Shown in pieces: positions 28,241 to 51,908 of a DNA stretch of 64,000 bases. The stretch covers positions 1 to 64,000 of the IMG/VR virus record IMGVR_UViG_3300048597_000634; one strand, written 5' to 3'. A model generated the notes under the pieces. That model was not told the DNA's origin and did not search any database. It was given only the letters and a program-made list of their open reading frames with translations. A program made the translations under genes and the position numbers. Positions within the stretch are counted from its first letter, which is position 1; each line of letters begins with the position of its first letter.

Positions 28241-28284
28241 AAAACCTCCCCTATACACCAGGGGAGGCATATAGGGGAGGTTTT
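28241..28284 (-). terminator. Terminator hairpin with 14-nt loop
   Basis: AAAACCTCCCCTATA-caccaggggaggca-TATAGGGGAGGTTTT. Confidence 0.75.
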
Positions 28285-28293
28285 TATTAAGGG

Positions 28294-28731: not shown

Positions 28732-28838
28732 GCTCCGTTTATCAGCTTTTTACTAGACCGCCTATACGCCGTTTATCCCCCGCCCATTCCCCGTCTATTT
28801 CCCACTTCTTCCCTATTTATTCCCCACCTACAGCCAAC

Positions 28839-31360: not shown

Positions 31361-31680
31361 TGCCGCCCACTAGAAGACGACCAAAAATAAAGGCACAACC
31401 CCCAGTACCCCACAAGCGCCGCCAGACCCACCACCAACGTCGACTAGAAGAAATAGCCACAGAACTAAACTTAGAAAGCACTCAAGACGTCATACCTTAC
31501 CTCATAGACTTCTATGATATGAAGTACCTAGATGACCTTGGGCAGCAACTCCGCCGACTAGAAATAAAAGGACCCACCCTCGTTCAGATGGCACAGCTAT
31601 CTATCCTCTATACCATCCTGGGTAAGATAGCTGAATCATTACCTGTCATTGGGTATGGTTGGCGCCAGGTTGATTTCTAA
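31360..31680 (+). CDS. Hypothetical protein (106 aa)
   Basis: ORF track; basic N-terminus. Confidence 0.6.
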   Translation: MPPTRRRPKIKAQPPVPHKRRQTHHQRRLEEIATELNLESTQDVIPYLIDFYDMKYLDDLGQQLRRLEIKGPTLVQMAQLSILYTILGKIAESLPVIGYGWRQVDF

Positions 31681-32558: not shown

Positions 32559-32564
32559 CGTTTA

Positions 32565-35304: not shown

Positions 35305-38300
35305 TTAAGCAGATAGTTCATCGTAGGTAGATATAGCATTTTGGTCGCCTTCTACAATCTGTAGGTATTCGTCTGTGTCTAAGGCAGTACCTACCAGTAA
35401 CTTATCGGGGCGAGCCACTTCATAAGTTAAAGAGGCACCAGTATCTGTATCTACCATACTGATTAAATTACCGTCATCAAGTTTTATCTCACCCGGGTCA
35501 CCTTCCCACATTTCATCAGTGACATCTGCTATGAAGTTAACTACCTGTGATGCTGCAGAAGCCGCCGCTGCTACCAACTCATTAGCAAAGTCATCTTCAG
35601 TGGCGCTATAGAAGCCGTGGTTAACCGGTCTGCCGCTAAGAACACCACCGACGACACGACCTAATAAGCCGGCGCCAATCTCAGTGACCATCCGACCTAA
35701 ACCAGAGTCACCTACAGTTAGTTCTTCTCCCAAGATAGGATTACCTTTGCGGTCTAAACCATGACCGCGGGCCATGTCTATGGCAGTACCGGCGCCGGCC
35801 GCTAAGCGACCCATACCTTGGTAAATAGTTTCATTAAGAACGCCGCGGGCTAATGCTTCGGTAGGTGAATCATAGTATCGGAAGTAATCCTTCATACGAG
35901 CCATTTGAAGGTTATCCGAAGCCCGGCGGACCTGAGCTAATCTAGCAGCACGGTCTTCCTCTGACTTACCATCCATCAACATCAAAGAGGACGCAGATTG
36001 CTCAAAGGTTCCAGAAGTAATGGCTGAAGAAAACACGTCTTGGACTAGTCCGCCTACTTGTTCAGTAATAGGTATATCACCCTGCATGGCAGCGAATAAG
36101 GTGGGTATAGCTAAGATACTGAGTGCCTCAGTAAAGCCATAGTTACGGCGCAGGGCCTGCTCTGTTTCATTTTGCTGACGGGCTATTTCCCTGTTTTGTC
36201 TATTCTCCCCAGCGTGGGTAATAGCTGTTTTAAGAGCTTGATGTTGTGCTGGTATTGATAAAGTTTCAGGATTAACCCGTCTTTGACCGAAGTCGTTATC
36301 AGTGCCTCCCGAGGTAGGTGTAGTTGGGGTAGGCATTGTCGTTACAACGGTTGGAGCCGGTCCAACTTCTTGTGTACGGAACTGCTCTAGTTGTTTACCT
36401 AGTATTTTACGTTCACCTGCGCTATCTACTCCCATATCCTGTAAGACCGATGTGGTGCCTTCTTTGTTAACCAAAGTAGTTAGCTGTTCTGCCGTTAACT
36501 CTTGGGTCATTCCTTTATCAGACAGACCTTTATTAAAGTCATCAGCCATATCTTGAGTGGCAACAAACCGGGGCTCTTTGTTGCTCGTAGCCCACTCATA
36601 GGCAGGGAGAGCGGCGTTAGCAGCAGCATCTAAGGCATGGCGCCCACTTTGGGATAAATCCTCTGGGTTTATACTGCCAAGTTCAATAGCATCTTGCATC
36701 ATGTCATTCCACTGAGCAACGTGACCTGTGAAGCCAGAACCAGAGGCTATAGCGTCTATTACCCCTGCTTGCATGAGGGCTTTAAGGACACCGGTTTGTA
36801 AGGTATTAGTCTCGCCATCGACCAGTAAATTGGCGGCGCTAAGACGACCTTCACCAGTCGTTAAGTCGACATCATCTCCACCATACCGAGCTAATTTGCT
36901 TGCTAGTTGCTGTCTACCGTCCTCTGTTTCTAATGCACTAGCATAGCCCTCAACAGTACCTACTTGACCTGCTATGTTCTGGTCAATGACGTCTTGTATT
37001 TGGTCTGGTAGGACGCCACCCATGGACAGGAATGACATAACGGCGCCGCCCAGTTTCGTATCAAACTCCTGGCCATCTCCTAACGAAGATGCGTAGGTTC
37101 TTACGGATTCTAAGACGTTAGTTAACCCAGTGGACATTGCCTGGGCTAGAGAAGCCTGGTTTAGTTTAGCGGAGTCAATACCTTGGGCCTGGGCGACCGT
37201 TTCACTGCCCATAGCTTCCATAGACTCAAATACTGTGAGGCTGGCTAGTTTTTGGGCGTCTATTAGAGCGTCTTTAACAGCGCCGAACTCTTCTGACTGA
37301 CCATCGGTTACTACACCTTGCACAGCTTGGTTTAGCTGTTTAGTTTTCATCATGACGTCCATAAGGTCGTCTGCCTGGTTACGGACAGTGACTTCCTGTA
37401 GGGTTCGGAAGGTAGTGGCAGCTACTTCGTTGACGCTGAGGTCTTGACCGGCAGCTTCGGCTTCAATAGCACTACGATTAGATGATAATTCGTTATAACG
37501 GTCGTTTAGTTCACCTGTCATGGTTGAGGTGAAGGCATCTGCTTCAGCGTCGGCGCCGTGGGTAGCTGTGTTCCAAGTCGAGAACGCGCCATCCGCCGCT
37601 GCTAGACGCCGGTTGACTTCCGTGGCTTTCTTACGTCGAGATTCTATTTCTCTAATTTGTCGTTCATGGTCAGACTTAGCATCTTCTACAGTCTCGAACG
37701 CCACTGACCTGCCCCTGTTTACATCGCGTAGTCTACTATCAGGGTCATTACTATTTAATAGTGCCAAGTCAGACCGTAATTTGGTCTCATTTTGCATTAT
37801 GCCTTCTGACCAAGTGCGGGCCTCTTCTATTGACCCAAAGGACTCGTCCGCGTTCCGACCCTTGTTTATAGCTGAGAGAGTATCTGCTTCTGTGCCGGAT
37901 TTAGACTTCTCTATGATGTCTAAGTAAGAAGTAGCGAGGTTTTCGTTAGCTGTAATAGTTAAGTCTTTGTCAGACACGCCGCTCATTCGAGTCAGTCTTC
38001 TGCGTAGTTCTGCTTGTATATTTTCAGGCCCAGAGCCCAGCAACGTAGAGGCGTCTACATCAGTTAGTCGTAAGTCAGGGTTTCTTTCTAGACCTAGTTT
38101 TCTGTTTAGGTCAGATAATGCCTTTTCCTTGGTACCGGCTTTAATCTTCGCGGCGGCGGCCTCTAACTGCCAATCTACATCTCCTGCCTCAATATCATTT
38201 ACTGTTAAAGCATCGTCACCACTGAGGTTAAACTTACGGTTATAAGCGTCTAACTTATCCTGCATTTGATAAGCAGCGTTTTTCCGTAGGATGGCGTCAG

Positions 38301-41300
38301 AATCTGCTGTACGAACAATCTTATAGGTTGGGTCTTGTGTTGGGTCAGTCTGTTCGTTAACTTGGACCTCCAAACCATGGGTGTATAAAGTCCGCTCAGT
38401 AGCCATTGGGTCAGTAGATTTAAAGTCATCTGCCACCGAGCTACCGCCGAGGAACTGAGACTGGAACTTACCGATTAAGTCGGCAATAGTGTTCTGAACA
38501 AAGGCGTCGTTGTCTATGTACCAACTACCATCTTGCTCAGATCTAAGGACTCGGTCAACCATCTCTGGTTTAATCCCTGCGCTCCGTAATGCCTGTTTCG
38601 CTGCATCAATGCGGTCAGTATCGCCACTGCTCTTACTAGCTAAATATTCTTTAACTTGGGCGTCATGGGTAGTTAAGCGCTCTGATAAGTCGTCTCTGGT
38701 TGCCTTTAGAGCGTCACTGTAGTGACCGGACTCCAGCATCTCTTCAGCTGTCATTGCGCGGCTACCAGTGTAGTCAGTTAGTAACTTCAACATACCGAAG
38801 GCGGTCATATCACCGTCTAGCTGAACACTATTGTTAGTACCTGCTTTGTCCCGTGAGTAGTTAAGCAGCTCACCGGCCCTAGCTCCTAAAAAGTCCTGGC
38901 TGATTATTTCCAGGTATTGTCTAGATACATCTTCCTCTGCCGCCGCTGGTTGCATCTGTAGCAATTTGTCATAGCCTTCTATGTTGGACCAGTCCTGTTC
39001 TTCCATACCGGCAATGCCTAGGCTTTTTATCTGCTGTACGGCACTATTGCTGAGCCTAAACTTGCTAGCCATCTCTACCAGACCGACCTTACCTTTAGGT
39101 TTAAGGGCTGCGTCCCGCAGGTATTGTTGGGTGGTTAACATAAAGCGGTAGGCTGTGGACGCTTTGGCCTCTTTACGGTCCATGCTTAGTTCCCAAGGCA
39201 CTCCGCTAGTATCCGTCATAGACCCTAAACTATCAGCTATAGCGCTAATGGTTTTAGCCAGGTCCACCTGAGGTATATTAGCATTAGTCTGCTGTAATTT
39301 CTCAATAGAATTGAGGAAGTCAGCGCGCACGGAGTCATTACTCATCATGCGATTCATGAGAGAGTCAGTCATCTGAGTAACTGCGCTGGGCACTACGGTG
39401 TTATAGACTTTACCGAGTAGTCCACCCCCAGTGGTACCCATGATGGACTGTATGGAACCTAAGTCAGCGGGGCTAATCTGACTACCAGCAACGTTACTAA
39501 ATATCTTGCTAGACGTAGTGATAGACATGAAGATGGCTTCGGATTGGTTTTGGAATTCCGCCACTTTTTTCATATAGTCATCTATAGACATCTTTTGCAT
39601 GTCTTCTATGACTTTCTGACGTACTGCTGCCTCATCTAGCGTGCTGCCACCTTTTATTCTTTGATGTATTTCTTCTTTTATTAAGGCTTGGTTCCACTGT
39701 TCAGCGGCGGCTACCATTTGATTGACGGTCATCGTGGTACCACCGCCGGCGCCGCCCCTACTGGCTTTCATACCTTCAACATCAAAACTAAGGCGCCCCT
39801 TGTCATCAATAGACACCTTATTATCTACCTCTTTAAGCCAGGCAAATGCCCCGACAGAGTTAGTGGTATCATCGGCGCGGTCACTGTAACCACTGATAGT
39901 GTCTCGATATTGCTTAACAGTTCCAGCTAACTCGTTATCATGTAGCCCGTATTGGTAGACGTCTTCACCTTGGGCATTAGTGACGTTATCTCCAAATAGG
40001 TAGGTAGGTAGGGCAAGGTAAGAAGACACATAGGACCGTAGACCTTTATAAGCTTTATCCCCTTTGACTTGTTGAGTCTCGCGGGCTTCACGGTTAATAT
40101 CCCGCAGGTCTTTGGTAGCTCGTTGGTTTAGCTCCTTAGCTTGCTTAGCCCTGCTATTAACTATATTTAGTTCTCTCTCTACCGTCCTTATTTTTTTGTC
40201 TATAGCATCTATTTCATTAAGGTCTTTAGGTTGTTTTGCTTGAGCTAGTTCTTTGCGAGCTACTAACTCCTTTAAAGCATTCTTCAACCGATTGGTACTG
40301 TCTTCAATAGTTTTAAGTTGTTCGTTAGTTTGAGCAATAGTGCTCTGGGCTTTAGTGATGCTACTAAGCGCTGCTTGGTATGAGTCGCCGTCGTAGTCCC
40401 CTAACCCCATGAATTGGAACCCGAAGGCACTAATCATCATCAGGGTATTATCAGCTGATTCATCGGGGGTGAAGAGGCTATTAACGAGTTGACCCCGTTT
40501 ACGCATCTCTTCCATGGTTACACCTTGTAAGGCACTTAGTGCAGAAGCAACGCCGCGGGGGCCTGCTGCTGAACCATATGGAGAACCTTGTCGACCTGCT
40601 ATGAGGTCAGACCGTAAGAAGTGGGCGTCTACCTTAGCAAGGATTTCATTACGGTTTTCTTTGGTTACTTCTTGACCAGTTATGAGTTGAAGTTCAACTA
40701 GGGTTCTAGACTTACCGCTGGACTCGTAGGCTTGTAAGAGTTCGACCTCAGTGAAGGTGCGGGCTTTACTGGAATCACCTTCACCTTCGGCGTAGGCCAG
40801 GGCGTAGTCAGACACCAACTTGTGCCACTTTTGTAGTTTCTCATATGCTTTATCTGCTGCTAGGGCATTAGATTTAGCTTTGGACAGCAAATCAGTTAAA
40901 AAGCTGTTGAAGGAGGTGCGCTGCTCCTTTAATGTCATACTTGTTTGCTCTTCAGTGCCTAACTCCAACAGCTGAATAACATGTGAGTCTAGTGTTTTAC
41001 CCTTACTTAGACTGTCAAAGGCTGAGATGATAGTAGACTTAGTGTCATCTGTAACAGTTAGTTCACCTTTTGTTATCTGGTCCCCACTGTATTTTAATAC
41101 CTTCAAAATGTCGTGTACTGTATCCCTATCTATGTCTTTGCCAGTCTTAGAAAAGGATAGTAGCTTGTCATACATAGCACCCATTTGACTTGCCTGGGCT
41201 ACTTTGTCTACCTGACTTACTCTTTGAGTACGCAGTGTTTTAGTCTGCTGTTTGACGCCCTTATCTAATTCTTTAAATCTACCAGAGATGTCATCGGCCA

Positions 41301-44300
41301 TTAATTTTCGGGCAACCTTAAACTCTTCTTGCTTACGCTCTGCCTTTTGTTCCGCCGTAACGTCTGCGTAGCTCTTAGCTTCTTCTAAAGGTACCTTGGC
41401 TTCTACTGGCGTCGACCTAGGTTTTTTACCTAGAGCTCTGTTTATAACTTCATAGGTACCGCTGACTAAACTATCAAAACTTACTTGACCTTCTCTGGTC
41501 TTTCTAGTTACGACCTTCTTCCCTTTATTTGACTTTCTGATATCTGAAGCACGCTGCGCTTTAGCCCGAGCTTTGTCTAACCAACTCTCTCCTATATAGT
41601 CATTATCAGTAAAAGATAGAATTTGCTGAACGTTACTAGACAGAAATGATTTCACCCTCTTATATAACTGTAAATCTACAGAGGCTGTATCCCCTTCAGA
41701 TGCTTCTATTTGTTTAATTAGTAGGTCTATATCTAGCGTTGCTTCGTTATATCTATCAGTGCCGAATAAACTAGAGCTGGCGTCACTACTCAACTTAGTT
41801 AGGTAATCCTTAACTTCATATATGACCGACGCCTGACTTTTAGAAATAGAAACATCAGTTACTGGGGCAACATAAGACCCAATACGCTTGCCTACTGCCT
41901 TCTTGGTGTCCGTTATGACAGCTATTTGTTTTTGTAGCTCTTGCGCCGCTTGTAAAGCATCTCTGCTTTTGGCCTCATCTGTTATGGCAAACTGGTTAGC
42001 GACATCGTTTTGAATCTTTAGCTTCTCCTGTAAACTCTCCAGATTCTCAGCCAAAGTACGGTCTTGCCCTTCCGGCGACATACCTAACATGTCATTCCAA
42101 CTTGACAACTCAGACTGCAAATAGGCTATCTTATCGGTGCCCTTTGTCTCAATCGCCTCCGCTAGTTGAGCTTCCAAGTTATGTTTTTCCTTATAGTGCC
42201 CGATTAAGAACTTACGTTGGTCTGGGTCAACCAACAAGTATTTTTCCATATCTCTATTTTTAGGTGCTACGTCCGCCATAAATCGTAGATAGCCGCCAGC
42301 AGTAGTAACCCCAGATGCAGAGTCAAACCGCTTACCCAACGCCACCTCAGTAGCTCCTACTAAGAAACTATTCATAGCGATGAATGAAGTACCCATCATG
42401 TTTAGACGGTTACCAGTCGCCTGACGGATACTGTTCTCGTTTTGGAGAATGCTAATAGCAGTGACCTTAGACATCATCATCGCCTCTTGTAGGTCTAATA
42501 GCTGCTGCCATTCCTCTTGGGTCACACTGGTTGTCTTATTTTGTTTTTCGCCCAAGTAAGAGGAAATCAAGCCGGCTTCAACCTTGTCTATTAAGCCCTT
42601 AGCGGCGGATAGTTTGGACACTAGATTTTGTTGAGCCTCTAACGCGTCATGACTGCTGTTCTGGAACAACAAAGACATCTTCTCTAAGACGTCGAGCCCA
42701 AGGATTAGACCAGTATCGCTAAAGCGTTCACCTTTGACGTTAGTGTGATGCCGCAGTCGTATCTTGCCTACTTCAAAGGAGTCTACGGCGTAGGAGGACA
42801 AGGATATAAACTGGGTCTTTTCTAGGCTACGTTTAAGGCTTAATAGCCGTTCTTGTTGGGCAGTAAGATTACCGCGGGGATTTAGATTACCAGCCCCTAG
42901 ACCTAATACAGTTTTGTACATGCTCTTCATACCTTCTAGGTATGCTGCGCCGCGGTCTTGTGATTGAGCGTGTTGTATCTTTTGGTATATGTTGCCACCA
43001 GGCGCCGCCATCCTAGCTATCTCATCTGCCTTTAAGAATTTATTAGCATCCTCAGAGCCGCCGCGCATAGCTATAGAGAACCAAGTATCAGTCTCTGTGG
43101 GTTGTTGGGCTGACATGTGGTCTAAGTAGCCAATGATGCCCCCCTCTCTTGCAGGTTGTAAATCTATTAGTTCTTTTCTTACCTCTTCTAATTCGCTTCT
43201 GGTTTTTTCACGATAATCTAAGCGTGCTTCTGTAGTTGGGACAGCGCCAGACCTTCTGTTCTTTTTAGTATTCTTAACTCTACCCGGTATACGACCTTCA
43301 TATGACCTATTCTGAGCTCTGTATTTATCGGTCAACACATTTAAAAGCCCATCTTCACCTACAAGTACTGCATCTATAACAGTCATTAGCTTTTCTGCAC
43401 TAAGCACATCGTTGCCTGTAGGGTTAGTTAGGCTACTCTCCATAAAAGCCAAGGACTTCGATATTTCGCCTACTTTAGTTTTATCAGCGCCTTTTATACC
43501 TATTACTTCTCTTGATATGCCTTTTAACTCACTAACAATGCGTAGTAGTGTTTTAGCATGTTTACCAGACGCGTCATATCTTACAGCGGAAGCGCCACGC
43601 AGTAACGCTGCATCTTCGTCACTCACACGCTCATTAAAGATACCGTCCTTTAATATCTCGTCTTTATTCCTGTCACCTTTTATCACCTCAGCTATGAAGT
43701 AATCTATCTGCTTCTTATAGGCGCTCTTCTCTGCTGCCAAAACCGCACTTATACGTTTAGCATCCTCCTCAGTCTGCCCTGACGCCATGGTGTAGCTAAG
43801 GTAATCATTTAACCCCGCCGATAATTCTTTAGTTACTCTCGCAACAGTACGCTGTCTAGTTATTCCAGCACTTAAACTGTCATACGTTAGGGTAGCTAAA
43901 GCCTTAGCTCGGTGCTCTAGTTCTGCCTCTGGGCTATCAAAATTCTTACCAGCGGGACCGTAGGCGATAGTGTTAATGCGCTGCATCATGTCTACTACGT
44001 CTGAGTCTCTCTTGCCGTCCTTAACACCGTCACTAACAAAGTCATATATATTTACACGGGAGAAGCCCACCTCGCTTTCTTCACCAGGTAGAGCGTTACG
44101 GTAAAGGCTATTGTAGTTAGCCAGGTAATCCCAGATGAATTGTTTAGACTGGGCGGCGGCACTCTGACCTTTAGGCTTACCTTTACGCTTAACCAACTTA
44201 TTAGTCTCATCTACTTCAACATCACCCCAGCGCCACTCGTTAATATTCATCAAGTCCATAGCCATCAGAGTCTCGCGCTGCTTGGCGTTAGGGATAGATC

Positions 44301-47300
44301 CGTAATAAGCCTTAGTAAGACTCATTAGGGCGTTTTGTACAGAGGTTAGGTCTGCAAATTCTTCTGGGGAGTAGGTATATTGTTTGAGTTGCCGTTCTGT
44401 CATAGAGCGGCTTAAGTGACCTTCAAGGGCTGTAGAGTCTTTACTACCTGCCGGGGTGCTAATCTTACTAAAATTAGTCTCCATTGGGATAGTTATGGTG
44501 CGGGCTTGCTGAATAGCCGCTGTAATACCTTCAAAGACAAGCTCTACTTCCTTGAGTGCTCTGTATTCGCCGTCAGTCAAAGCATCATCTGACTCACTGG
44601 ACTTAATTTTATTTAAGATGCCTTTTATCAGCTCTTGGCTGGGCAAAGAGTAACCCATACGCTGGGCTTGAACACGCATAGCATCTTGTATAACGGTGCC
44701 GCCCCGGTCTGCTAAACCACCATATGCCTCTACGGCACTATAGAAACCAATTAAGGCAGAGAAGCTGGAGCCCACAGGCTGGCTTTTAGCACGATCAGCG
44801 GTGTTTATGGTCTCTAACATGCCGGGCTGGAATGAGCTTAGTAACTTACCGAACTCAGAGTCAGAGGAAAAGTTGGTAATGCCAATTTCCCGTAGACGGT
44901 CTTCTAACTTCAGTAGTTGTGAGCCCATATCACTGCGTTTGATAACTATCCTACGCAGAGTGCTGTCAAATTTAGTCCTTAATGCCTTCTGTGCATCGCT
45001 AGCGAATTCGCCAGTTGAGGCGATCAAGTCATCTATGACGCTGCGGTGGGTCATATTTCCCTTAGTGATAGACTTAATAGCCTCAAGGTAGGGGTTATAC
45101 TCGCTCTTGTCTAAGTCTTGAATGTATTTATGCTGCTCACTTTGGTACATGGTCTGCATAGGGGACCATAGAGCAGTGGTAGCAAAACGTTTCTCTAAGT
45201 TAGTCTGTTGATTAAGCTCGGGTGACAAATCAAATCTACTCTTAGCTGTTCCAGCTCTAGTTAAGAAGCCATCTATGTCTAAGTCTTGATTAAGTATGCG
45301 GTTTACGGACTCCATATCACCGCCAGATATCTTATGGATTTCCCCAGCTATCAGGTATGCTTCCCTGCGCTTCATTTCTATTTGTCTTTGCCTTCTACCT
45401 TTCTTGTCTTCGTCGGCGCCTAAATTGAATAAGTTATTAAGGACAGTCAAGACAGAATCACGGGCAGCCTCATACTTCTTATCTACTTCTGCCAGACCCT
45501 CGTCGCCACGAATTAGGCTTAATGGAGAAGTAAAGAGACTCTGACCGCTGAGAATAACTTCACCCAAAGCTCGGGTTGTTCTTAATTGTTCTGGGGTCAA
45601 GTCCCGATAAATATCGGCGCTGGCTTTAGTCAAGAAGGATAATAACCCTACTGGCTTAGTATCAAAGTCTTCTATGATTACTCCGCCTCTAGACTTCTCA
45701 CTAAAGGTATAGTCAAGTAGACCTTTAGCTGCTCTTGTTAGGTTATCTCTAGCTTTTTGTACTTCTGTGTCTTTAGCGTCACCCAATGCGACAATAACTT
45801 GGTGTAATAAAGCAGACTCTACGCTTTCTGAGTCACTAGTCCACTTACCAAAACCACCTAAAGCGCTAAACATGGCTAAGGAAGCCGAACCAGGTGCACT
45901 AGAAAAGGTCTTAAACCCTTTACTGACATCTGTTTCTAACCCCATTAGGCTTTTCTTAGCTCTTAAAGAGGCGGCGTACTGCTTACCATCGCCGTTATTT
46001 AAAGTAGAGCTTAACCGGTCATAGAGCATAGCTAGGTTATTATCCCCACCTATGGTCTTAGCGTCGGCGTTAATAAAGAGCATCGACAGGGCTAGAGCTA
46101 CATTCATCCCACCACTAGTCTTATCTGTCAAGCGCTTATAGATACCGCTTTCTTGGCGGTCACTCAGCATCATCAAACCAATCTCAAAGTTGAAGGCTTT
46201 AACCTGAGAAGGGCTAATCATGGAGTAGATGTCTTCTGCGCTTACTTCTCTACTGTCATTACCAGACTTAACAGAGGAAGGCAGTAAGTTTATAGACTCT
46301 TGTCCCATTAGACCTCTAGCCGCCTCGAATAGGGCTAGCTGACCTCCTTTCATGGGACCTTTAGGGATAATCGAGCCGGCCCGCATACCACTCATAAAGT
46401 CTTCTACGTTGTAGAATCTGGTGTCTATGGTGGCAGTATTGCCGGACATGGAAGTGACTGTTACTTCCCCTAGGACACTGATAGAGTTCAGTTCATCGCC
46501 CGTAATAGCTGGTACCCGAAGCTGCATTGGCTGAGCGTGCCCTCCATCGTAGGACATAAAGCCCCACATCTTAAAGGCGGCGTCGCCGGGGTCTAGGTCA
46601 CCTACTTTAGCGCCGGTGGTGTTCACTGTTGACACCTCACCGACTTGGCGCCCGCCTTGATAGGCACCACGGTTTAACACATAGCCTACCTGACCTGTTT
46701 TATGGTCAGTTATAACCCGTATACCTTGGTTCTCTTCCCGGACCTTAGCCACCGCTCCTTTGTAGATAGCGTCTATCTGGGCGGCGTCTATGTCTTGGTC
46801 AATCTTTTTAAATGCGTCTATGATGCCAGCTCTAATTCCTTGTCTAGTTACAGCGCCCTCAGTGTCCACGTTGAAGTTAATAGCTGGCAGATTCTTAGCA
46901 ACGGCTACTTCTTTAATAGTCAGCTGTAGTTTTTCGTTTAGTTGCTTATTAAGGTCAGCGATTACCTTCGTGTGTTGAATAGTGGTATCCCTGGCAATGA
47001 ATACAGTACCGGGCTGTAGGTATTGTTGGACGGAACTTTGCAGTGCTGCTGGACCAATCATGCCGCCGCTGAGAGTGATGTTAGTCTGAACCGGGTGAGG
47101 TTTTAATAGCTTCATGCCGTATTCATACTCGGACCTTCTATACCCTGTGTTCTGGATGCCATAGTCGCTGAGTTGGGTAGCCCCGGCAATAAGAATGCTA
47201 AGGCGCGGGCGCTCACTACCCATATACCCCTTACCTACTGCTCTATCATCAATAGCTATCTCCTTAGCTATTTGGAGCATCATTGCCCGCTCTAAATCAT

Positions 47301-50300
47301 AAATCTTCTTCTTATCTACGCCCTTACGGGGGTCTCCCTCTCTAGCAAAACGCTCCTCCATCATCGCTATTAGAGCGTGATATTGTTGGGCTGGCATGCT
47401 ATCTAGTAACCGACCACCAATGATATCTTCAGGGGCATCAAGAAAGTTCTTCTTGCCACTACCCTTGCCAGCGTCGTAGTCAGAGTATTTACCGTTAAGA
47501 CCTAATGAATAGGAATAATCAATGAACTCCCTGCTTGCGTCATACATAGGCCTGGTGGACAGCAGGTTTTTCATCCGCTGCATGATTTGCTCAGTCTTGG
47601 CGTAGGGGAAGTAATAGAGCAGGTCGTATTCTTTAGCCTCCTCCTCTTCTTTAGTGCCAACTTCAGACCCGTACTTTGGATTAAAAGTTTGAGCTTCTAG
47701 CGCTTTAGTTACTTTATCGACGGCATCACCTTCTACGCCCATCTCTTTTAATAGACGTGCTGACCGTTCTTTATACCCTTTACGGTCTATAGCCTGTAAC
47801 GTAGGCATAGTGTTAGCTAGCCCTAGCATGCTATAGACAACTGGAGCGCCGCCTTGAATCTTAGTAAGACCGCCTATCTTCTCAGTAAAGGATTGGTGTT
47901 GTGCTCTACCTACAGCTTTTCCTACTGTGCGGAGATATTGCCCTCCGTCGGGTGAACCTAACATTTCACCATGGCTAAGAGGGTATGGGTTAAGAATAAG
48001 CCCCCCTATCCTACCGTCTACCAGGGAAGGGTCTATGCCTATACCAGGAGACACTAACCGGAATAAGTCCATAGTTTCCGGCGTAAGACCAACTACAGGT
48101 TTAGAGTGTAGGGATTGCCCATGGCTGTAGTTTTCTGTATGTGGTTGGGAATAGGCGTCTACTTGTCTAGAGTAAGATTCACTATAGCCAGAGGCTACGG
48201 TATCTCTGTAGATTTGCATGCCTACTGGGGTAGCACCGAAGGCTTGCATAATTATGTCGTTATAGCGCCCAGTGAAGCCTGAGGTATAGTCGCGGGCATC
48301 GTCTGGTCTTAACCCCACAGACTTCTCCATCATCATGCTGAAGTTATGGACTAGTCTACTTGCTAAGTCTTGGGCGTTAGCTTGTCTAGAGCCGGGGATG
48401 ATTTGGTTGAATAAAGTACCTATTTCACTGCCCCGCTGACGCATAACATCGGATTCAGGGCCGGAATAACGTGGGATTATGTCTGATTGTCCAGACACGC
48501 CGGCTAAATCACGCTGCAGCAGTGTTAATACACCCTCAAGATTACCTTCCTTCTGTATGAGGTTAAGTAAAGACCCTAGACCTTGTTCTCTAGCAACCAG
48601 TACCTTGTGTATTTCTGAGTCTGGTGTAGAATCACCGTGCTTGTTATATAGGTAAAGACTAGACACTCTATCAGCCAGGGTACCTTCTAAAGCCTTCTTC
48701 ATCACATCTGACCCTAGTGCTTCGTAAGTATAGGCAATACCCCGCACTTTAGTCTCGTAATTCATGCTGGTACGCATAGTACTGAGGAAGCCGCCTAATA
48801 CGTCTAAGGCGTTGGCTTCATAGCTGCCTTGTGGTCCTAACTGAGCGTTCTCTACTGTGCGGTCTATTTCGTTGTAGCGGATGAAGTTGAACGTGCTGTC
48901 AGTAGCGTTTTCAAAGACCGCCCCGGTTAGGAATCGCTGGGTCTTGTTAATGTAGACCATGGGGCTTTCTATTACTGTCATAGCGCCGCCCGGTCCAGAC
49001 TGAACTGACTTCCGCTCAGACCCAATAGTCAAGCCAATAGAGTAGTCTTTAGCGCCCATATTAGGCTGGGCAATGCTTATTTTTAGTCCAGTAAGACGGT
49101 AGCCGGTGGAAGACTTGGTATCTAAGATATATTCTTTTTTGTATCGGAAGGGCGCGGCTGAGGCGTCATCTGCAGTAGCCTCTTTACCACCCATCCTTTC
49201 TATCATCTCTATCGCACTGTTAACAAACTCAGCCTTACCCTTTTGTTGTACTTGGGTGCCCTGATATCGGTGCCTCAAGCTTTGTCCATAGCGCCCTAAT
49301 ACACCACCAGAGTCGGGCTTTTCTTCATCAAACCTACCAATACCGTAGAAGTAATTATTCTTAATACGTTGCTGGTCTGCAGCGGATAGTAGTCCTAAAG
49401 AGTCACCGCGGAAGAAAGCAGATACTTCGATGTTATCTGTGGTGCTTTCCCTATCTCTGGGTTTTAAGGCTTTCTCACTGAAGTTAGCGGAGCCGAGAGT
49501 ATATTCCAGTAGGTCGCCGGCGGCACTGAACATGGCCATAGACTTACTGTGCATATACTGCGTAGGCATCAACGTAAATGCACTTTCACCACGCGCACCT
49601 GGTTTTAATAAAGACTCGACAAGGTCGTATCTCTTCTGTTGTCCTTCGTCTAGGGTACTACGGTTTACTTTAGAGAACTTATCAAGTAGGTCAAATAGCC
49701 CTTGATTAGACCCCATACTGGAGCCAGACACTCCTATCTTGAGGTTGCCCTTTGATGCTAGTTTTTGAAGGTTTTCTATGTCAGCGCCGTCAAATAGCGT
49801 ATCTTCAAACTTACCACCCCGACCTATAAGAGCTTGCTCAAAGTATTGAGCAGTGATGACCAGCTTATTAGAGTCTTCAGCAGCAGTCTTAAACATGCGG
49901 CTAAATTGCCCCTTAATCTCTTGATTGGCGAAAATAGTGCGGTTCTTCTCATTTACGCCTGCTGCCGATGCACTTTGTATGTTTTCCCTAAAGCGCTGAA
50001 AGAAACTAGTCGAAGCTGATATATCAGAGAGACTAGTAATAGCTGTGTTGTTACTTATTTGGTCTCTGGTTACTTTAATGAGAGCATCGGCCGCTGCTTT
50101 AATCTCAGATGACACGCGGTTAAAAGACCCCAACTTGTCCTCATCTACCGGTCTATTAATTAAGACTAAGTCTTCTACTGTATTTGACTTAGCTAGGGTG
50201 TTAGTTAAGTTCTGCGTGCTGATGAAGAAAGACTCGATCTGCTCAGTTTTAGCGACAAGCTTACCCTCTTCATCTATAACTCTTTTATTTTCATACCAGT

Positions 50301-51330
50301 AACCCAACTTGGCGTGGACACTGCCGCCTGGCATTTGTAGCCCGCCGAGCTCTAACTGTCTATTATTCCTCTCAGCCAGCGTTTGAGCTGCATAGATACT
50401 AACATCATTGCCACCATAGATACCCATAGGGTCAGAGCCTTCTTCCTGAGTACCGTAACCAGCAGATAACACTTGTGCCGAAGATATTCGTTGGGTGACT
50501 AACTCAGTTCTACCTGTGCGTTCAGTAATAGCGGTCATGAAGCCAGCTTCTTGAACTTGAAATATAGACCCTCTAAAGCCCAACCCAGACCGCTCTTTGT
50601 CAGCAAACATGTTGTAGTAGTCCTGGGTAGTAGGTCTACTCATGTAGCCTTCTGGTGTGGCGTAACTGTCAGAAGTTAGTTTGAGTTGTCTACTGAACCT
50701 ACCATCGCTGTCTATAGACTCAGCAAGGCGGTTACCTTGGAACCGGGCGTTGTTGTCGTAATAGCTAAAGGTGCGTTCTGACGCTTCGTCTAAATTCAAC
50801 CCTGAGCTACCTATAGCCGAACCGAACCCACGGCGGCTAACATTCTGCTTGAACTCTTTAGAAAAGTCTTTAAGCGCCTTATACGGGTCTTGTGACCTAG
50901 TGTGGACGTCTTCTACAAATTGGGAGGTGATAGAGTGCCCAGCGACGTTGGTTCTTAAGCGATTCCAGTGGGCTTGTTGCTCTGGAAATGCTGTGCGTAC
51001 ATTACTCTCTGTCTCTAAAAATTTATCTACTAACTCTTTGGTTATTACATATTGTGTTGTTTCACCTCTTTCGTCTACAACTTCACGGATAGCTTCTACT
51101 AACCGCCAAGAAAATGCGCTGGCGGTCATAGCCGGGCCTTCGGCAGCTAACTTATCTTTTACTGCTTCAAGTACTTCTTCGCGACCAAGTAGCTCTATTA
51201 AACCTCGTAGAGCGGCGTCTGCTTGTATATCAAAATCTGACACTATGATTACGTCTCCGTGAGAGAGGCTATAGTCCCACTTTACTTGCAAAAAAGAACC
51301 CGGCTCTGGGCGGAGTCGGGCGGCGGGCAA
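35305..51330 (-). CDS. Giant protein (5341 aa) in the tape-measure position: putative ejected virion two-barrel RNA polymerase with an N-terminal tandem PLD/nuclease-like module
   Basis: HAK (50308-50316)...STQNL and HSK (49543-49551)...GSANFS...NIE. Beta-like SGMRAGSIIPKG...DIYSMISPSQVK (about 46200-46390), IAGRQGSP (RQGSP at 40579-40593), FMGLGDYDGDSY (GDYDGD at 40384-40401). Hydrophobic Gly/Ala segments near the C-terminus. Lies directly after a frameshifting chaperone-like gene. Confidence 0.7.
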   Translation of the reverse strand: MPAARLRPEPGSFLQVKWDYSLSHGDVIIVSDFDIQADAALRGLIELLGREEVLEAVKDKLAAEGPAMTASAFSWRLVEAIREVVDERGETTQYVITKELVDKFLETESNVRTAFPEQQAHWNRLRTNVAGHSITSQFVEDVHTRSQDPYKALKDFSKEFKQNVSRRGFGSAIGSSGLNLDEASERTFSYYDNNARFQGNRLAESIDSDGRFSRQLKLTSDSYATPEGYMSRPTTQDYYNMFADKERSGLGFRGSIFQVQEAGFMTAITERTGRTELVTQRISSAQVLSAGYGTQEEGSDPMGIYGGNDVSIYAAQTLAERNNRQLELGGLQMPGGSVHAKLGYWYENKRVIDEEGKLVAKTEQIESFFISTQNLTNTLAKSNTVEDLVLINRPVDEDKLGSFNRVSSEIKAAADALIKVTRDQISNNTAITSLSDISASTSFFQRFRENIQSASAAGVNEKNRTIFANQEIKGQFSRMFKTAAEDSNKLVITAQYFEQALIGRGGKFEDTLFDGADIENLQKLASKGNLKIGVSGSSMGSNQGLFDLLDKFSKVNRSTLDEGQQKRYDLVESLLKPGARGESAFTLMPTQYMHSKSMAMFSAAGDLLEYTLGSANFSEKALKPRDRESTTDNIEVSAFFRGDSLGLLSAADQQRIKNNYFYGIGRFDEEKPDSGGVLGRYGQSLRHRYQGTQVQQKGKAEFVNSAIEMIERMGGKEATADDASAAPFRYKKEYILDTKSSTGYRLTGLKISIAQPNMGAKDYSIGLTIGSERKSVQSGPGGAMTVIESPMVYINKTQRFLTGAVFENATDSTFNFIRYNEIDRTVENAQLGPQGSYEANALDVLGGFLSTMRTSMNYETKVRGIAYTYEALGSDVMKKALEGTLADRVSSLYLYNKHGDSTPDSEIHKVLVAREQGLGSLLNLIQKEGNLEGVLTLLQRDLAGVSGQSDIIPRYSGPESDVMRQRGSEIGTLFNQIIPGSRQANAQDLASRLVHNFSMMMEKSVGLRPDDARDYTSGFTGRYNDIIMQAFGATPVGMQIYRDTVASGYSESYSRQVDAYSQPHTENYSHGQSLHSKPVVGLTPETMDLFRLVSPGIGIDPSLVDGRIGGLILNPYPLSHGEMLGSPDGGQYLRTVGKAVGRAQHQSFTEKIGGLTKIQGGAPVVYSMLGLANTMPTLQAIDRKGYKERSARLLKEMGVEGDAVDKVTKALEAQTFNPKYGSEVGTKEEEEAKEYDLLYYFPYAKTEQIMQRMKNLLSTRPMYDASREFIDYSYSLGLNGKYSDYDAGKGSGKKNFLDAPEDIIGGRLLDSMPAQQYHALIAMMEERFAREGDPRKGVDKKKIYDLERAMMLQIAKEIAIDDRAVGKGYMGSERPRLSILIAGATQLSDYGIQNTGYRRSEYEYGMKLLKPHPVQTNITLSGGMIGPAALQSSVQQYLQPGTVFIARDTTIQHTKVIADLNKQLNEKLQLTIKEVAVAKNLPAINFNVDTEGAVTRQGIRAGIIDAFKKIDQDIDAAQIDAIYKGAVAKVREENQGIRVITDHKTGQVGYVLNRGAYQGGRQVGEVSTVNTTGAKVGDLDPGDAAFKMWGFMSYDGGHAQPMQLRVPAITGDELNSISVLGEVTVTSMSGNTATIDTRFYNVEDFMSGMRAGSIIPKGPMKGGQLALFEAARGLMGQESINLLPSSVKSGNDSREVSAEDIYSMISPSQVKAFNFEIGLMMLSDRQESGIYKRLTDKTSGGMNVALALSMLFINADAKTIGGDNNLAMLYDRLSSTLNNGDGKQYAASLRAKKSLMGLETDVSKGFKTFSSAPGSASLAMFSALGGFGKWTSDSESVESALLHQVIVALGDAKDTEVQKARDNLTRAAKGLLDYTFSEKSRGGVIIEDFDTKPVGLLSFLTKASADIYRDLTPEQLRTTRALGEVILSGQSLFTSPLSLIRGDEGLAEVDKKYEAARDSVLTVLNNLFNLGADEDKKGRRQRQIEMKRREAYLIAGEIHKISGGDMESVNRILNQDLDIDGFLTRAGTAKSRFDLSPELNQQTNLEKRFATTALWSPMQTMYQSEQHKYIQDLDKSEYNPYLEAIKSITKGNMTHRSVIDDLIASTGEFASDAQKALRTKFDSTLRRIVIKRSDMGSQLLKLEDRLREIGITNFSSDSEFGKLLSSFQPGMLETINTADRAKSQPVGSSFSALIGFYSAVEAYGGLADRGGTVIQDAMRVQAQRMGYSLPSQELIKGILNKIKSSESDDALTDGEYRALKEVELVFEGITAAIQQARTITIPMETNFSKISTPAGSKDSTALEGHLSRSMTERQLKQYTYSPEEFADLTSVQNALMSLTKAYYGSIPNAKQRETLMAMDLMNINEWRWGDVEVDETNKLVKRKGKPKGQSAAAQSKQFIWDYLANYNSLYRNALPGEESEVGFSRVNIYDFVSDGVKDGKRDSDVVDMMQRINTIAYGPAGKNFDSPEAELEHRAKALATLTYDSLSAGITRQRTVARVTKELSAGLNDYLSYTMASGQTEEDAKRISAVLAAEKSAYKKQIDYFIAEVIKGDRNKDEILKDGIFNERVSDEDAALLRGASAVRYDASGKHAKTLLRIVSELKGISREVIGIKGADKTKVGEISKSLAFMESSLTNPTGNDVLSAEKLMTVIDAVLVGEDGLLNVLTDKYRAQNRSYEGRIPGRVKNTKKNRRSGAVPTTEARLDYREKTRSELEEVRKELIDLQPAREGGIIGYLDHMSAQQPTETDTWFSIAMRGGSEDANKFLKADEIARMAAPGGNIYQKIQHAQSQDRGAAYLEGMKSMYKTVLGLGAGNLNPRGNLTAQQERLLSLKRSLEKTQFISLSSYAVDSFEVGKIRLRHHTNVKGERFSDTGLILGLDVLEKMSLLFQNSSHDALEAQQNLVSKLSAAKGLIDKVEAGLISSYLGEKQNKTTSVTQEEWQQLLDLQEAMMMSKVTAISILQNENSIRQATGNRLNMMGTSFIAMNSFLVGATEVALGKRFDSASGVTTAGGYLRFMADVAPKNRDMEKYLLVDPDQRKFLIGHYKEKHNLEAQLAEAIETKGTDKIAYLQSELSSWNDMLGMSPEGQDRTLAENLESLQEKLKIQNDVANQFAITDEAKSRDALQAAQELQKQIAVITDTKKAVGKRIGSYVAPVTDVSISKSQASVIYEVKDYLTKLSSDASSSLFGTDRYNEATLDIDLLIKQIEASEGDTASVDLQLYKRVKSFLSSNVQQILSFTDNDYIGESWLDKARAKAQRASDIRKSNKGKKVVTRKTREGQVSFDSLVSGTYEVINRALGKKPRSTPVEAKVPLEEAKSYADVTAEQKAERKQEEFKVARKLMADDISGRFKELDKGVKQQTKTLRTQRVSQVDKVAQASQMGAMYDKLLSFSKTGKDIDRDTVHDILKVLKYSGDQITKGELTVTDDTKSTIISAFDSLSKGKTLDSHVIQLLELGTEEQTSMTLKEQRTSFNSFLTDLLSKAKSNALAADKAYEKLQKWHKLVSDYALAYAEGEGDSSKARTFTEVELLQAYESSGKSRTLVELQLITGQEVTKENRNEILAKVDAHFLRSDLIAGRQGSPYGSAAGPRGVASALSALQGVTMEEMRKRGQLVNSLFTPDESADNTLMMISAFGFQFMGLGDYDGDSYQAALSSITKAQSTIAQTNEQLKTIEDSTNRLKNALKELVARKELAQAKQPKDLNEIDAIDKKIRTVERELNIVNSRAKQAKELNQRATKDLRDINREARETQQVKGDKAYKGLRSYVSSYLALPTYLFGDNVTNAQGEDVYQYGLHDNELAGTVKQYRDTISGYSDRADDTTNSVGAFAWLKEVDNKVSIDDKGRLSFDVEGMKASRGGAGGGTTMTVNQMVAAAEQWNQALIKEEIHQRIKGGSTLDEAAVRQKVIEDMQKMSIDDYMKKVAEFQNQSEAIFMSITTSSKIFSNVAGSQISPADLGSIQSIMGTTGGGLLGKVYNTVVPSAVTQMTDSLMNRMMSNDSVRADFLNSIEKLQQTNANIPQVDLAKTISAIADSLGSMTDTSGVPWELSMDRKEAKASTAYRFMLTTQQYLRDAALKPKGKVGLVEMASKFRLSNSAVQQIKSLGIAGMEEQDWSNIEGYDKLLQMQPAAAEEDVSRQYLEIISQDFLGARAGELLNYSRDKAGTNNSVQLDGDMTAFGMLKLLTDYTGSRAMTAEEMLESGHYSDALKATRDDLSERLTTHDAQVKEYLASKSSGDTDRIDAAKQALRSAGIKPEMVDRVLRSEQDGSWYIDNDAFVQNTIADLIGKFQSQFLGGSSVADDFKSTDPMATERTLYTHGLEVQVNEQTDPTQDPTYKIVRTADSDAILRKNAAYQMQDKLDAYNRKFNLSGDDALTVNDIEAGDVDWQLEAAAAKIKAGTKEKALSDLNRKLGLERNPDLRLTDVDASTLLGSGPENIQAELRRRLTRMSGVSDKDLTITANENLATSYLDIIEKSKSGTEADTLSAINKGRNADESFGSIEEARTWSEGIMQNETKLRSDLALLNSNDPDSRLRDVNRGRSVAFETVEDAKSDHERQIREIESRRKKATEVNRRLAAADGAFSTWNTATHGADAEADAFTSTMTGELNDRYNELSSNRSAIEAEAAGQDLSVNEVAATTFRTLQEVTVRNQADDLMDVMMKTKQLNQAVQGVVTDGQSEEFGAVKDALIDAQKLASLTVFESMEAMGSETVAQAQGIDSAKLNQASLAQAMSTGLTNVLESVRTYASSLGDGQEFDTKLGGAVMSFLSMGGVLPDQIQDVIDQNIAGQVGTVEGYASALETEDGRQQLASKLARYGGDDVDLTTGEGRLSAANLLVDGETNTLQTGVLKALMQAGVIDAIASGSGFTGHVAQWNDMMQDAIELGSINPEDLSQSGRHALDAAANAALPAYEWATSNKEPRFVATQDMADDFNKGLSDKGMTQELTAEQLTTLVNKEGTTSVLQDMGVDSAGERKILGKQLEQFRTQEVGPAPTVVTTMPTPTTPTSGGTDNDFGQRRVNPETLSIPAQHQALKTAITHAGENRQNREIARQQNETEQALRRNYGFTEALSILAIPTLFAAMQGDIPITEQVGGLVQDVFSSAITSGTFEQSASSLMLMDGKSEEDRAARLAQVRRASDNLQMARMKDYFRYYDSPTEALARGVLNETIYQGMGRLAAGAGTAIDMARGHGLDRKGNPILGEELTVGDSGLGRMVTEIGAGLLGRVVGGVLSGRPVNHGFYSATEDDFANELVAAAASAASQVVNFIADVTDEMWEGDPGEIKLDDGNLISMVDTDTGASLTYEVARPDKLLVGTALDTDEYLQIVEGDQNAISTYDELSA

Positions 51331-51332
51331 AC

Positions 51333-51908
51333 CTAACGAAAGACTTTTGATAATGGGTCGCCGTGTTTCCCTCCTAGGGCGGATAAGGTAGGGTTATGTA
51401 CAGCTTCTTTTAGTCTCTGTTCTTGTTCTGCTTGCTTTTGCTTGATCTTGCGGTTTAGGTTCTCTACTTCCATTTTGACCGCTTCTACAATCAACATGGG
51501 ATAACCATACTGTCTTATAAAAGGGTCTTCGTTACCCCCTAGCCACTCTGCTAAAGACACTGGCGCTAATTGACTTACAGCTAACCAATTAGCTATTTGA
51601 TACCGCTCGCTGAGGATTTTAGCTGCGTCTTCATTTACCCTTGACCTAACAATAGAAAGATTCTTTAGTTGATCTTCGGTAATATCCCAGCGTGGGTATG
51701 GGTAGCCAGGGGGTAAAATCCATAGTCTACCGGCGGCAGGTATTTCTGGGTCATACTCAGCTACACCACATTCAAATAATCCAGGGCTAACTAAGCATGC
51801 CGAGTTTACAACTCTTGAACAGTGTTGGCCGGCGGCTTGGATGTTTGCTTGGGTTTGGGTGCGGGCGTTGTACCGGGCTTGCTCAAACCAAGTTTTTCCA
51901 GATAACGC
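51333..51908 (-). CDS. -1 frame extension of the tail assembly chaperone (lambda gpGT-like product, about 425 aa in total)
   Basis: The -1 frame is open for 192 codons from the slippery site to the stop at 51333 (ALSGKTWFEQARY...KVFR). The ORF track shows only its last 75 aa. Confidence 0.7.
   Translation of the reverse strand, partial: ALSGKTWFEQARYNARTQTQANIQAAGQHCSRVVNSACLVSPGLFECGVAEYDPEIPAAGRLWILPPGYPYPRWDITEDQLKNLSIVRSRVNEDAAKILSERYQIANWLAVSQLAPVSLAEWLGGNEDPFIRQYGYPMLIVEAVKMEVENLNRKIKQKQAEQEQRLKEAVHNPTLSALGGKHGDPLSKVFR

Follow-up and report, generated by a model that had tools for sequence, protein, structure and literature searches.

Could a phage protein that sits where a tail tape measure might be expected instead be an RNA polymerase delivered by the tail? 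The question is raised by a 5341-residue ORF in a 64,000-nucleotide stretch of IMG/VR record IMGVR_UViG_3300048597_000634 (here, the window). An earlier note proposed that the protein is a virion RNA polymerase fused to, or replacing, the tape measure, with two catalytic barrels split by a very large insertion, or else that it is a processed polyprotein. The observation behind this proposal held: the ORF is intact, every motif is at the residue the note gave, and the protein follows a frameshifted tail-chaperone-like gene. The interpretation was only partly supported, and the RNA-polymerase fold is not shown. We think the protein may represent a second lineage of the tail-delivered RNA polymerase known from one Thermus phage, P23-45 (PMC10770324).

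We first asked whether the gene anatomy is real (Table 1). The -1 frame of the upstream gene remains open for 191 codons after the slip, which has a chance probability of roughly 1e-4. The slippery site and an extension of 168-191 codons recur in five other loci that encode the giant (L001-L004 and L006), and the extension peptides align, such that the arrangement is more than chance. The note's description of the next gene downstream as gpU-like was not confirmed, as this gene and its homologues are baseplate-wedge-like. The C-terminal segments, which the note described as hydrophobic, are only moderately so in this protein (Kyte-Doolittle 19-residue mean below 1.5), although eight of the eleven homologues checked, including gp080 of Microcystis phage Ma-LMM01, have a stronger hydrophobic segment in the C-terminal 100-270 residues.

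Table 1. Features of the giant gene and its surroundings (window coordinates; aa, residues of the 5341-aa protein).
Feature	Coordinates	Strand	Residues	Observations
G-like tail-assembly-chaperone candidate, 267 aa	51806..52609	-		Tandem duplication of a unit of about 115 aa; homologues beside the giant in L001-L004 and L006; Ma-LMM01 gp081 matches both halves; no Pfam hit
Slippery heptamer G GGA AAG	51908..51914	-		X_XXY_YYZ phase; same heptamer in L003, L004 and L006; G GGG AAG at the same codons in L001 and L002
-1 frame extension (T-like part)	51333..51913	-		Gives a 425-aa GT-like fusion; ends at a TAG (51333-51335) 2 nt before the giant's TTG; peptides of six loci align, for example around W(L/I)G..DPF and EVE
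Giant ORF	35305..51330	-	1-5341	Counted from a TTG; a gene caller starts it 29 codons later at a GTG, giving 5312 aa (P0001); full-length homologues P0002 (65% identity) and P0003 (32%); nineteen further family members from a remote search
Candidate beta-like (DPBB-B-like) block	46141..46563	-	1590-1730	PA..DE strands, GxRx6KGP and SQxKxFNFExG; R1650, K1657, G1658, P1659, K1711, F1713 and G1718 in at least 90% of members; found by a profile HMM in most members
GMRAGSIIPKG			1648-1658	
DIYSMISPSQVK			1700-1711	
Candidate first half of the DPBB-A-like barrel	42307..42468	-	2955-3008	R..G.S.I...S.L....EV..G.R; R2969, G2980, G2999 and R3001 in at least 90% of members; resemblance to beta' GKRVDYSGRSVI by eye, not supported by blind scans
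Candidate catalytic block	40345..40629	-	3568-3662	RQGxP, about 60 aa, then T.M..SA.G..F..LGDYDGDSYQ; L, G, D, D, G, D invariant in the alignments; R3580, G3582 and P3584 invariant or nearly so
IAGRQGSP			3577-3584	
DYDGD	40384-40398		3645-3649	
Predicted long helical hairpin or coiled coil	40021..40353	-	about 3660-3770	Directly after the motif; AlphaFold2 DSSP helices at model residues 800-850 and 856-924; only PDB profile hits are Rad50 and keratin coiled coils
Candidate bridge-helix-like element	39064..39159	-	4058-4089	QQ.LRDAALKPK; Q, Q, R, D, K, K invariant; best ungapped match in E. coli RpoC is the bridge helix at 775-794, shuffle P 0.17
C-terminal moderately hydrophobic Gly/Ala-rich segments	35632..36129	-	5068-5082 and 5219-5233	EALSILAIPTLFAAM and GAGLLGRVVGGVLSG; conserved islands at aa 5067-5102 and 5218-5236; stronger segment near the C-terminus in most homologues checked and in P23-45 gp96
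First gene after the giant, 222 aa	34631..35299	-		Homologous to L001_175, which links to L003_177 and L004_175; those two hit PF25691 (Baseplate wedge 3 tail fiber network component) at 42.4 and 31.3 bits against a cut-off of 27
Second and third genes of the trio (689 aa and 293 aa)	31677..34634	-		Homologues follow the giant in L001, L003, L004 and L024; PAAR-motif genes nearby in L004, L005 and L024
3186-aa ORF	13169..22729			Possible second two-barrel-like enzyme fused to an SF1 helicase

We next asked whether the putative catalytic motif is conserved, a point that had been set beforehand as one that could refute the proposal. The giant belongs to a family of about 30 distinct proteins of 3055-5341 aa, at 15-70% identity, in uncultured contractile-tailed phages, and the family includes Ma-LMM01 gp080, annotated only as hypothetical. 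LGD[YFN]DGD[STP] is present in every member found. All 21 remote hits of aa 3451-3760 are giant proteins or fragments of them and carry GD[YFN]DGD, as do Ma-LMM01 gp080 and a Microcoleus phage CDS. The block around the motif is among the best-conserved stretches of the protein, and the proposal was therefore not refuted on this point. The block that the note called beta-like is also conserved family-wide, lying about 2000 aa upstream of DYDGD here and about 830-1400 aa upstream in relatives. Blastn and tblastn searches of the phage collection with segments of the window and with P0020 found no match, and gp080 was found by synteny instead.

Does the core then have the fold of a two-barrel polymerase? 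Neither of two AlphaFold2 models shows a confident barrel. The model of aa 2849-3856 (mean pLDDT 63.3) is mostly long helices at low confidence, and the model of the compact two-barrel segment from locus L017 has a mean pLDDT of 54.5; pLDDT is below 50 at RQGxP, DYDGD and GxRx6KGP, and shorter domain-sized segments would have been a better choice. Foldseek searches with the models gave no polymerase match, only coiled-coil noise. Pfam and PHROG scans of the giant, whole and in six pieces, gave nothing meaningful, and a precomputed PF25869 tag on P0001 could not be reproduced. Phmmer and hmmsearch against PDB sequences, with single segments and with alignments A1, A5 and A6, again gave only coiled-coil noise, and a profile search of 5.8 billion proteins with A6, for proteins of 407-1295 aa, found no smaller relative. 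Known two-barrel families also often lack profile-level homology to each other.

Direct comparisons with known polymerases gave at most weak signals. A restricted hhalign aligns R3580 with beta' R425 and DYDGD with DFDGD, but with a pairwise E of 0.003 and a probability of 11%. Blind HMM and ungapped PSSM scans of six family islands against RpoB, RpoC and the N-terminus of P23-45 gp96 recovered only the DFDGD hits, plus the non-significant best hit at the bridge helix. Thus, our by-eye pairings of GNRLNMMGTSF with GKRVDYSGRSV and of GMRAGSIIPKG with GRHGNKG are unconfirmed, as is the equivalence of GxR1650x6K1657GP to beta K-x7-K-G. The residues R3580 and P3584 lie 61-65 aa upstream of the motif, but as R-x3-P rather than the [RK]xP, 20-100 aa upstream of DxDxD, used as a filter in Supplementary Data 4 of PMC10770324. 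GDxDGD-like strings also occur in calcium-binding repeats. We found nothing to support a T7/N4-type single-subunit polymerase, and rejected this reading.

The evidence on a tape-measure role is mixed, and does not show that the protein is the length-determining tape measure. The giant directly follows the frameshifted gene in the window and in L001-L003, and heads a conserved baseplate-like trio. However, in L004, L006, Ma-LMM01 and the Microcoleus phage the chaperone-like gene is adjacent in another orientation or order, and can be divergent from, or downstream of, the giant. The phage is a myovirus, and its sheath, tube, VgrG-like and baseplate-J genes form a separate module on the other strand beyond the head genes. 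Tape measure length is proportional to tail length, at about 0.15 nm per residue for lambda gpH. In the relative MaMV-DH01, a 3562-aa giant, which would give about 530 nm, is paired with a 260-nm tail, which does not fit a whole-protein ruler; only part of the protein could serve this purpose.

Four known systems provide points of comparison. The closest precedent is Thermus phage P23-45 gp96, a tape measure fused to a two-barrel virion RNA polymerase (Chaban et al. 2024, PMC10770324). Like the giant, gp96 is a very large protein (5002 aa) in a tail gene module, with a DxDGD motif (DFDGD at 779-783) conserved in its homologues, no sequence similarity to other polymerases outside the motif, and hydrophobic segments near the C-terminus. 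We detected no homology between the two: hhalign of the family against gp96 alone and against its four homologues showed no similarity (probability below 1%). In gp96 the polymerase is the N-terminal 1200 aa, whereas here the candidate core is central (aa about 1450-4320), the motif is at 68% of the protein's length, and the beta'-like barrel would be split by about 570 aa. The M23 peptidase domain (PF01551) of gp96 and all its homologues is absent here, and P23-45 is a siphovirus with an 800-nm tail that matches the protein's length.

Ma-LMM01 gp080 and MaMV-DH01 ORF102, from Microcystis myoviruses (Fukuivirus), belong to the same family as the giant: the T1 and T3 profiles match, LGDFDGDTF is kept, the gene lies next to the portal and head genes, and a homologue of the chaperone-like gene is adjacent. 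These proteins are 3562 aa, annotated as hypothetical, and far diverged, with 15-17% identity to the window protein in the aligned core regions and 30% for the capsid protein; their chaperone-like gene has a single repeat and lies on the opposite strand. The single-chain two-barrel polymerases compared were crAss-like phage phi14:2 gp66 and Neurospora QDE-1; gp66 is a large virion-packaged protein with a DxDxD-type motif, and a DYDGD-type motif is typical of the RdRP and phage clade. No sequence or profile similarity to these proteins was detected, and gp66 is a capsid cargo protein of a podovirus-like phage. Lambda gpG/gpGT with gpH has the same slippery heptamer in the same phase, a -1 extension, and a chaperone gene immediately before a very long gene. 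Here the products are larger, G is duplicated, no Pfam chaperone family is hit, the gene order relative to the giant is not conserved in relatives, and the tube gene is not adjacent.

We suggest, tentatively, that the giant is a virion protein of the tail and baseplate module, built and held by the G/GT-like chaperone encoded beside it and ejected into the host through the contractile tail. In this model, the conserved central core, about 2900 aa here and about 1440 aa in the most compact relatives, would be a highly diverged single-chain two-barrel RNA polymerase. A beta-like barrel would supply R1650 and K1657, and a beta'-like barrel, split by a helical insertion, would supply the DYDGD metal site, followed by a helical hairpin and a bridge-helix-like block near aa 4070. 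The N- and C-terminal thirds, including the hydrophobic C-terminal segments, would serve tail assembly and membrane insertion, and the enzyme would transcribe the first phage genes on entry, as shown for gp96. The gene anatomy, the frameshift, the synteny and the motif conservation are established by our data, while the barrel fold, polymerase activity, presence in the virion, a tail location and ejection are inferred. We consider a polymerase more likely than not, but the full tail-delivery reading falls somewhat short of an even chance. In favor, the candidate blocks run in the order described for single-chain two-barrel polymerases (DPBB-B-like, DPBB-A-like, helical element, bridge-helix-like; PMC10770324), and gp96 was itself found only through its DFDGD motif. 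On the other hand, Ma-LMM01 early, middle and late genes all have host sigma-70-like promoters (PMC5780444).

The best-surviving alternative, although less likely, is a giant tail, tape-measure or ejection protein without polymerase activity, in which the invariant block would be a structural Ca2+/Mg2+ site or would serve a different hydrolytic or transferase activity during cell-envelope penetration. The negative profile and structure searches, the resemblance of GD[ST]DGDG strings in unrelated phage proteins to calcium-binding repeats, the R-x3-P spacing, and the lack of any hint of phage-specific promoters in the Ma-LMM01 transcriptome are consistent with this view. However, the motif has the exact form and hydrophobic-strand context of beta' and RdRP catalytic loops, and co-occurs with an upstream conserved Arg, a distal conserved basic pair and a downstream LxDxALK block in the order expected for two-barrel polymerases. 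Moreover, gp96 was equally undetectable by sequence and proved to be active.

Less likely still, the giant could be a virion RNA polymerase but not a tape measure, packaged in the capsid or at the portal like N4 vRNAP, crAss-like gp66 and the phiKZ vRNAP, and ejected with the DNA. Tail length would then be set by another protein, for example one of the unannotated 572-, 537- or 611-aa ORFs in the canonical slot between the tube and baseplate genes. The giant gene always lies next to the portal gene, giant length does not match tail length in MaMV-DH01, and the composition is less helix-rich than that of gp96 (helix-forming residues 0.43-0.49 against 0.56). Against this, the only G/GT-type frameshift gene seen in the 82 kb examined is adjacent to the giant, baseplate-like genes follow it, most homologues checked have tape-measure-like hydrophobic segments near the C-terminus, and none of the three ORFs has tape-measure features or a chaperone gene in front of it. 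An artefactual fusion of several genes through assembly or sequencing error, or a decaying pseudogene, has no evidence in its favor and is effectively refuted, since uninterrupted ORFs of 3055-5341 aa with the same block order occur on about 20 independent contigs from different samples and in cultured phages.

A broader reading is possible, though we hold it only tentatively: a whole lineage of contractile-tailed cyanophage-like viruses, including Ma-LMM01, may deliver through the tail a giant single-chain two-barrel RNA polymerase that evolved independently of, or diverged beyond recognition from, gp96, with barrels separated by roughly 830-2000 residues and a duplicated G/GT chaperone as partner. 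The same genome may also carry a second enzyme of this type in the 3186-aa ORF, for which a search for relatives through its KGDSDGDG motif returned only unrelated repeat proteins.

If the core is an active polymerase, tail-associated delivery of a transcriptase would no longer be a peculiarity of one Thermus siphovirus, but would also occur in contractile-tailed phages of bloom-forming cyanobacteria. Because Ma-LMM01 and the MaMV phages are in culture, the hypothesis can be tested directly. An active polymerase would prompt a second look at the published conclusion that Ma-LMM01 relies only on host sigma-70 transcription (PMC5780444), and would assign a function to the largest unannotated gene of Ma-LMM01-type phages. 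It would also add a very divergent branch, with widely split barrels, to the two-barrel RNA polymerase superfamily.

The earlier note described a giant protein with RNA-polymerase-type motifs behind a frameshifted chaperone-like gene, and this observation is confirmed. The minus strand of the window carries an uninterrupted ORF of 5341 codons counted from a TTG, and a public gene call for the same protein (P0001) starts 29 codons later, giving 5312 aa. Every motif listed in the note, including two Gly/Ala-rich hydrophobic stretches near the C-terminus, is present, at the residues given in the table.

Coordinates of the features described in the text. Positions are those of the window unless a locus number (L) is given; residues are those of the protein named in the row.
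Feature	Position	Strand	Residues (aa)
Giant ORF	35305..51330	-	
GMRAGSIIPKG, giant protein			1648-1658
DIYSMISPSQVK, giant protein			1700-1711
IAGRQGSP, giant protein			3577-3584
DYDGD, giant protein			3645-3649
GLLGK.YNT..P, giant protein			around 3971-3981
QQ.LRDAALKPK, giant protein			around 4068-4079
Gly/Ala-rich hydrophobic stretches, giant protein			5068-5082 and 5219-5233
Conserved core, giant protein			about 1450 to 4320
Chaperone-like gene	51806..52609	-	
Slippery heptamer GGGAAAG	51908-51914		
Ma-LMM01 gp081, single-repeat chaperone-like gene (locus L008)	L008:15895-16257		
Tail sheath gene (locus L025, just beyond the window's end)	L025:10949-14545 (contig 62.6-66.2 kb)		
Second giant ORF	13169-22729	-	
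SF1 helicase, second giant protein			about 2700-3100
[RK]xP...DxDxD-type motif pair, second giant protein			1866-1934
12-nt repeats inside the second giant ORF	14758-14799	-	
Cluster of small paralogous genes	24400-28500	-	
Intergenic tandem array	28652-28797		
GIY-YIG endonuclease gene	30344-31063	+	
nblA gene (locus L006, a relative)	L006:14228-14434		

The gene just upstream of the giant encodes 267 aa and contains GGGAAAG in the X_XXY_YYZ phase. After a -1 slip the frame stays open for 191 further codons and ends at a TAG 2 nt before the start of the giant, for a predicted fusion product of 425 aa. Homologues of this gene lie beside the giant in five other loci, three with the identical heptamer at the same codons and two with GGGGAAG, and all have a -1 extension of 168-191 codons that opens within a few codons of the site. 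The extension peptides align with each other. This is a genuine, conserved, lambda-G/GT-type programmed frameshift. The 267-aa product is an internal tandem duplication of a unit of about 115 aa, and the single-repeat gp081 of Microcystis phage Ma-LMM01, at 120 aa, aligns to both halves.

Diverging from this operon are genes for a Mu-like portal, a protease or scaffold protein, and an HK97-type capsid protein about 30% identical to that of Ma-LMM01. The window is the first 64 kb of IMG/VR contig UViG_3300048597_000634, which also exists as a 214-kb JGI record, and beyond the window's end the same plus-strand module continues with a 1198-aa sheath, a tube homologue of Ma-LMM01 gp092, three unannotated ORFs of 572, 537 and 611 aa, a weakly VgrG-like 739-aa protein, a gp25/W-like protein, and a baseplate-J protein. 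The phage is therefore a myovirus with a genome of at least 214 kb. The sheath is about 1.5 times the size of the Ma-LMM01 sheath, and only its C-terminal 460 aa match sheath profiles.

Three genes of 222, 689 and 293 aa follow the giant, and are conserved after the giant in other loci. Homologues of the first hit Pfam PF25691, 'Baseplate wedge 3 tail fiber network component', above its cut-off, and PAAR-motif genes lie nearby in three loci. Thus, the gpU-like label that the note gave to the gene after the giant is wrong, but the neighborhood is tail and baseplate. The chaperone-like gene always lies between the giant and the portal gene, although its orientation varies: it is upstream and co-directional in the window and in the related loci L001-L003, divergent in L004, L006 and Ma-LMM01, and downstream in the Microcoleus phage.

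A full scan of 1.84 billion representative proteins with aa 3451-3760 of the giant found 21 proteins. Sixteen of these are 3314-5310 aa, and the other five, of 333-2054 aa, are probably fragments, at least one of which lies at a contig end. A word-indexed search found full-length relatives at 65% and 32% identity, and scans of IMG/VR, JGI metagenomes and GTDB added about 15 loci. By synteny, we also found gp080 of Ma-LMM01 (3562 aa, annotated 'hypothetical protein'), its MaMV-DH01 counterpart, and a partial CDS in Microcoleus phage My-WqHQDG. In L006 an nblA gene lies directly after the giant, and among the loci L030 and L029 one family member sits on a 253-kb contig binned as Synechococcus; both point to cyanobacterial hosts. 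Another member sits on a 7.8-kb contig binned as a Halobacteria MAG, which is probably a binning artefact.

All of about 30 distinct sequences keep LGD[YFN]DGD[STP]. The note had set lack of DxDGD conservation in homologues as grounds for refutation, and the comparison does not refute its reading. The block T.M..SA.G..F..LGDYDGDSFQ is among the best-conserved islands of the protein, and its LGD.DGD core is invariant. Other columns present in at least 90% of members are R3580, G3582 and P3584; R2969, G2980, G2999 and R3001; R1650, K1657, G1658 and P1659, which form the block that the note called beta-like; and the GLLGK.YNT..P and QQ.LRDAALKPK islands. In the most compact member, at locus L017, the conserved core is only about 1440 aa, which is the size of a minimal two-barrel polymerase.

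The pattern of conserved blocks fits an RNA polymerase: a distal block with two conserved basic residues, an Arg...Pro block about 60 aa before a hydrophobic strand and DxDGD, a helical hairpin, and an LxDxALK block. These run in the order DPBB-B, DPBB-A, helical clamp element, bridge helix that is described for single-chain two-barrel polymerases (PMC10770324). A restricted hhalign against E. coli beta' residues 395-495 aligns R3580 with R425 and DYDGD with DFDGD, with a pairwise E-value of 0.003 but a probability of only 11%. The best ungapped RpoC match of the LRDAALK island is at the bridge helix, but the shuffle P is 0.17. No positive result came from Pfam, PHROG and PDB sequence searches, from hhalign against the family of Thermus phage P23-45 gp96, from a profile search for smaller relatives, or from blind scans for the other motif pairings that we had made by eye. 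Two AlphaFold2 models, each built from a 20-sequence alignment, had mean pLDDT values of 63.3 and 54.5, and both fell below 50 exactly at the conserved blocks. In the model of the window protein, DYDGD sits in a coil between a short strand and a long helix, and so is not inside a coiled coil, but confidence there is too low to count. Foldseek returned only coiled-coil matches.

A second giant ORF in the window, of 3186 aa, has a C-terminal Dda/RecD-like SF1 helicase, and the sequence LTRSPIKDGPVLRVLRMP, then about 45 aa, then IGVSVIAMTDITKGDSDGDG, passes the [RK]xP...DxDxD filter used for two-barrel polymerases. This could be a second, non-virion polymerase, or a chance or calcium-binding motif; only one close relative (72% identity) was found, so conservation says little. 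A run of 12-nt GGGCGGGGGCGG repeats inside this ORF encodes, on the coding strand, a proline-rich linker. Elsewhere in the window, an intergenic tandem array of the 22-nt unit TAATTCCCCGTCCATCCGCTGT, with three perfect copies plus two degenerate ones, looks like an iteron array. A cluster of small paralogous genes includes a 211-nt duplicated segment at 73% identity, and shared 5´ ends preceded by a conserved hairpin of the form CCCCTCTATA...TATAGAGGGG. A GIY-YIG endonuclease gene, probably a homing endonuclease, lies on the opposite strand between this cluster and the baseplate-like trio.

Evidence on whether the giant is a tape measure points both ways. The adjacent G/GT-like gene, the baseplate genes downstream, the C-terminal hydrophobic segments (also present in gp96 and in most homologues checked), and the absence of a recognizable conventional tape measure in the 82 kb examined all favor this role. 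However, the sheath and tube module lies elsewhere and contains the three ORFs of 537-611 aa without an assigned function, the orientation of the chaperone gene is variable, and the composition is less helix-rich than that of gp96. In addition, MaMV-DH01 has a 260-nm tail and a 3562-aa giant, such that at most about half of the protein could lie extended in the tube.

The idea of a polymerase carried by a tail protein is already established for one phage. P23-45 gp96, a 5002-aa tape measure for an 800-nm tail, was shown to carry an active two-barrel virion RNA polymerase in its N-terminal 1200 residues, with DFDGD at 779-783 (Chaban et al., 2024, PMC10770324). This polymerase, which transcribes pre-early genes, was discovered through the motif alone, because the rest showed no similarity to polymerases. 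The present family differs in having no detectable homology to gp96, a candidate core that is central rather than N-terminal, a candidate beta'-like barrel that is split, no M23 peptidase domain, and a contractile tail. In the literature searched, no paper links Ma-LMM01-type phages to a phage polymerase, and a transcriptome study of Ma-LMM01 found only host sigma-70-like promoters, which is mild evidence against an essential virion polymerase there.

Of the alternatives, the one that survives best, though we consider it unlikely, is a giant tail or ejection protein whose DYDGD site is not that of a polymerase; GDxDGD-like strings also occur in calcium-binding repeats, so a non-polymerase metal site remains possible. 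Less likely still is a capsid-packaged virion polymerase that is not the ruler. An artefact is very improbable.

The interpretation offered in the earlier note, a virion polymerase fused to or replacing the tape measure, is thus partly supported. The intact ORF, the frameshift, the gene neighborhood and the conservation of the motifs are direct observations, while the barrel fold, polymerase activity, presence in the virion, a tail location and ejection are inferred from sequence pattern, gene context and the gp96 precedent. We think it more likely than not that the protein contains a polymerase. The fuller reading, which we favor over each alternative but hold only tentatively, is that the giant is a tail-module virion protein, of a family with a member in the cultured phage Ma-LMM01, carrying a very divergent two-barrel RNA polymerase core that is ejected on infection.
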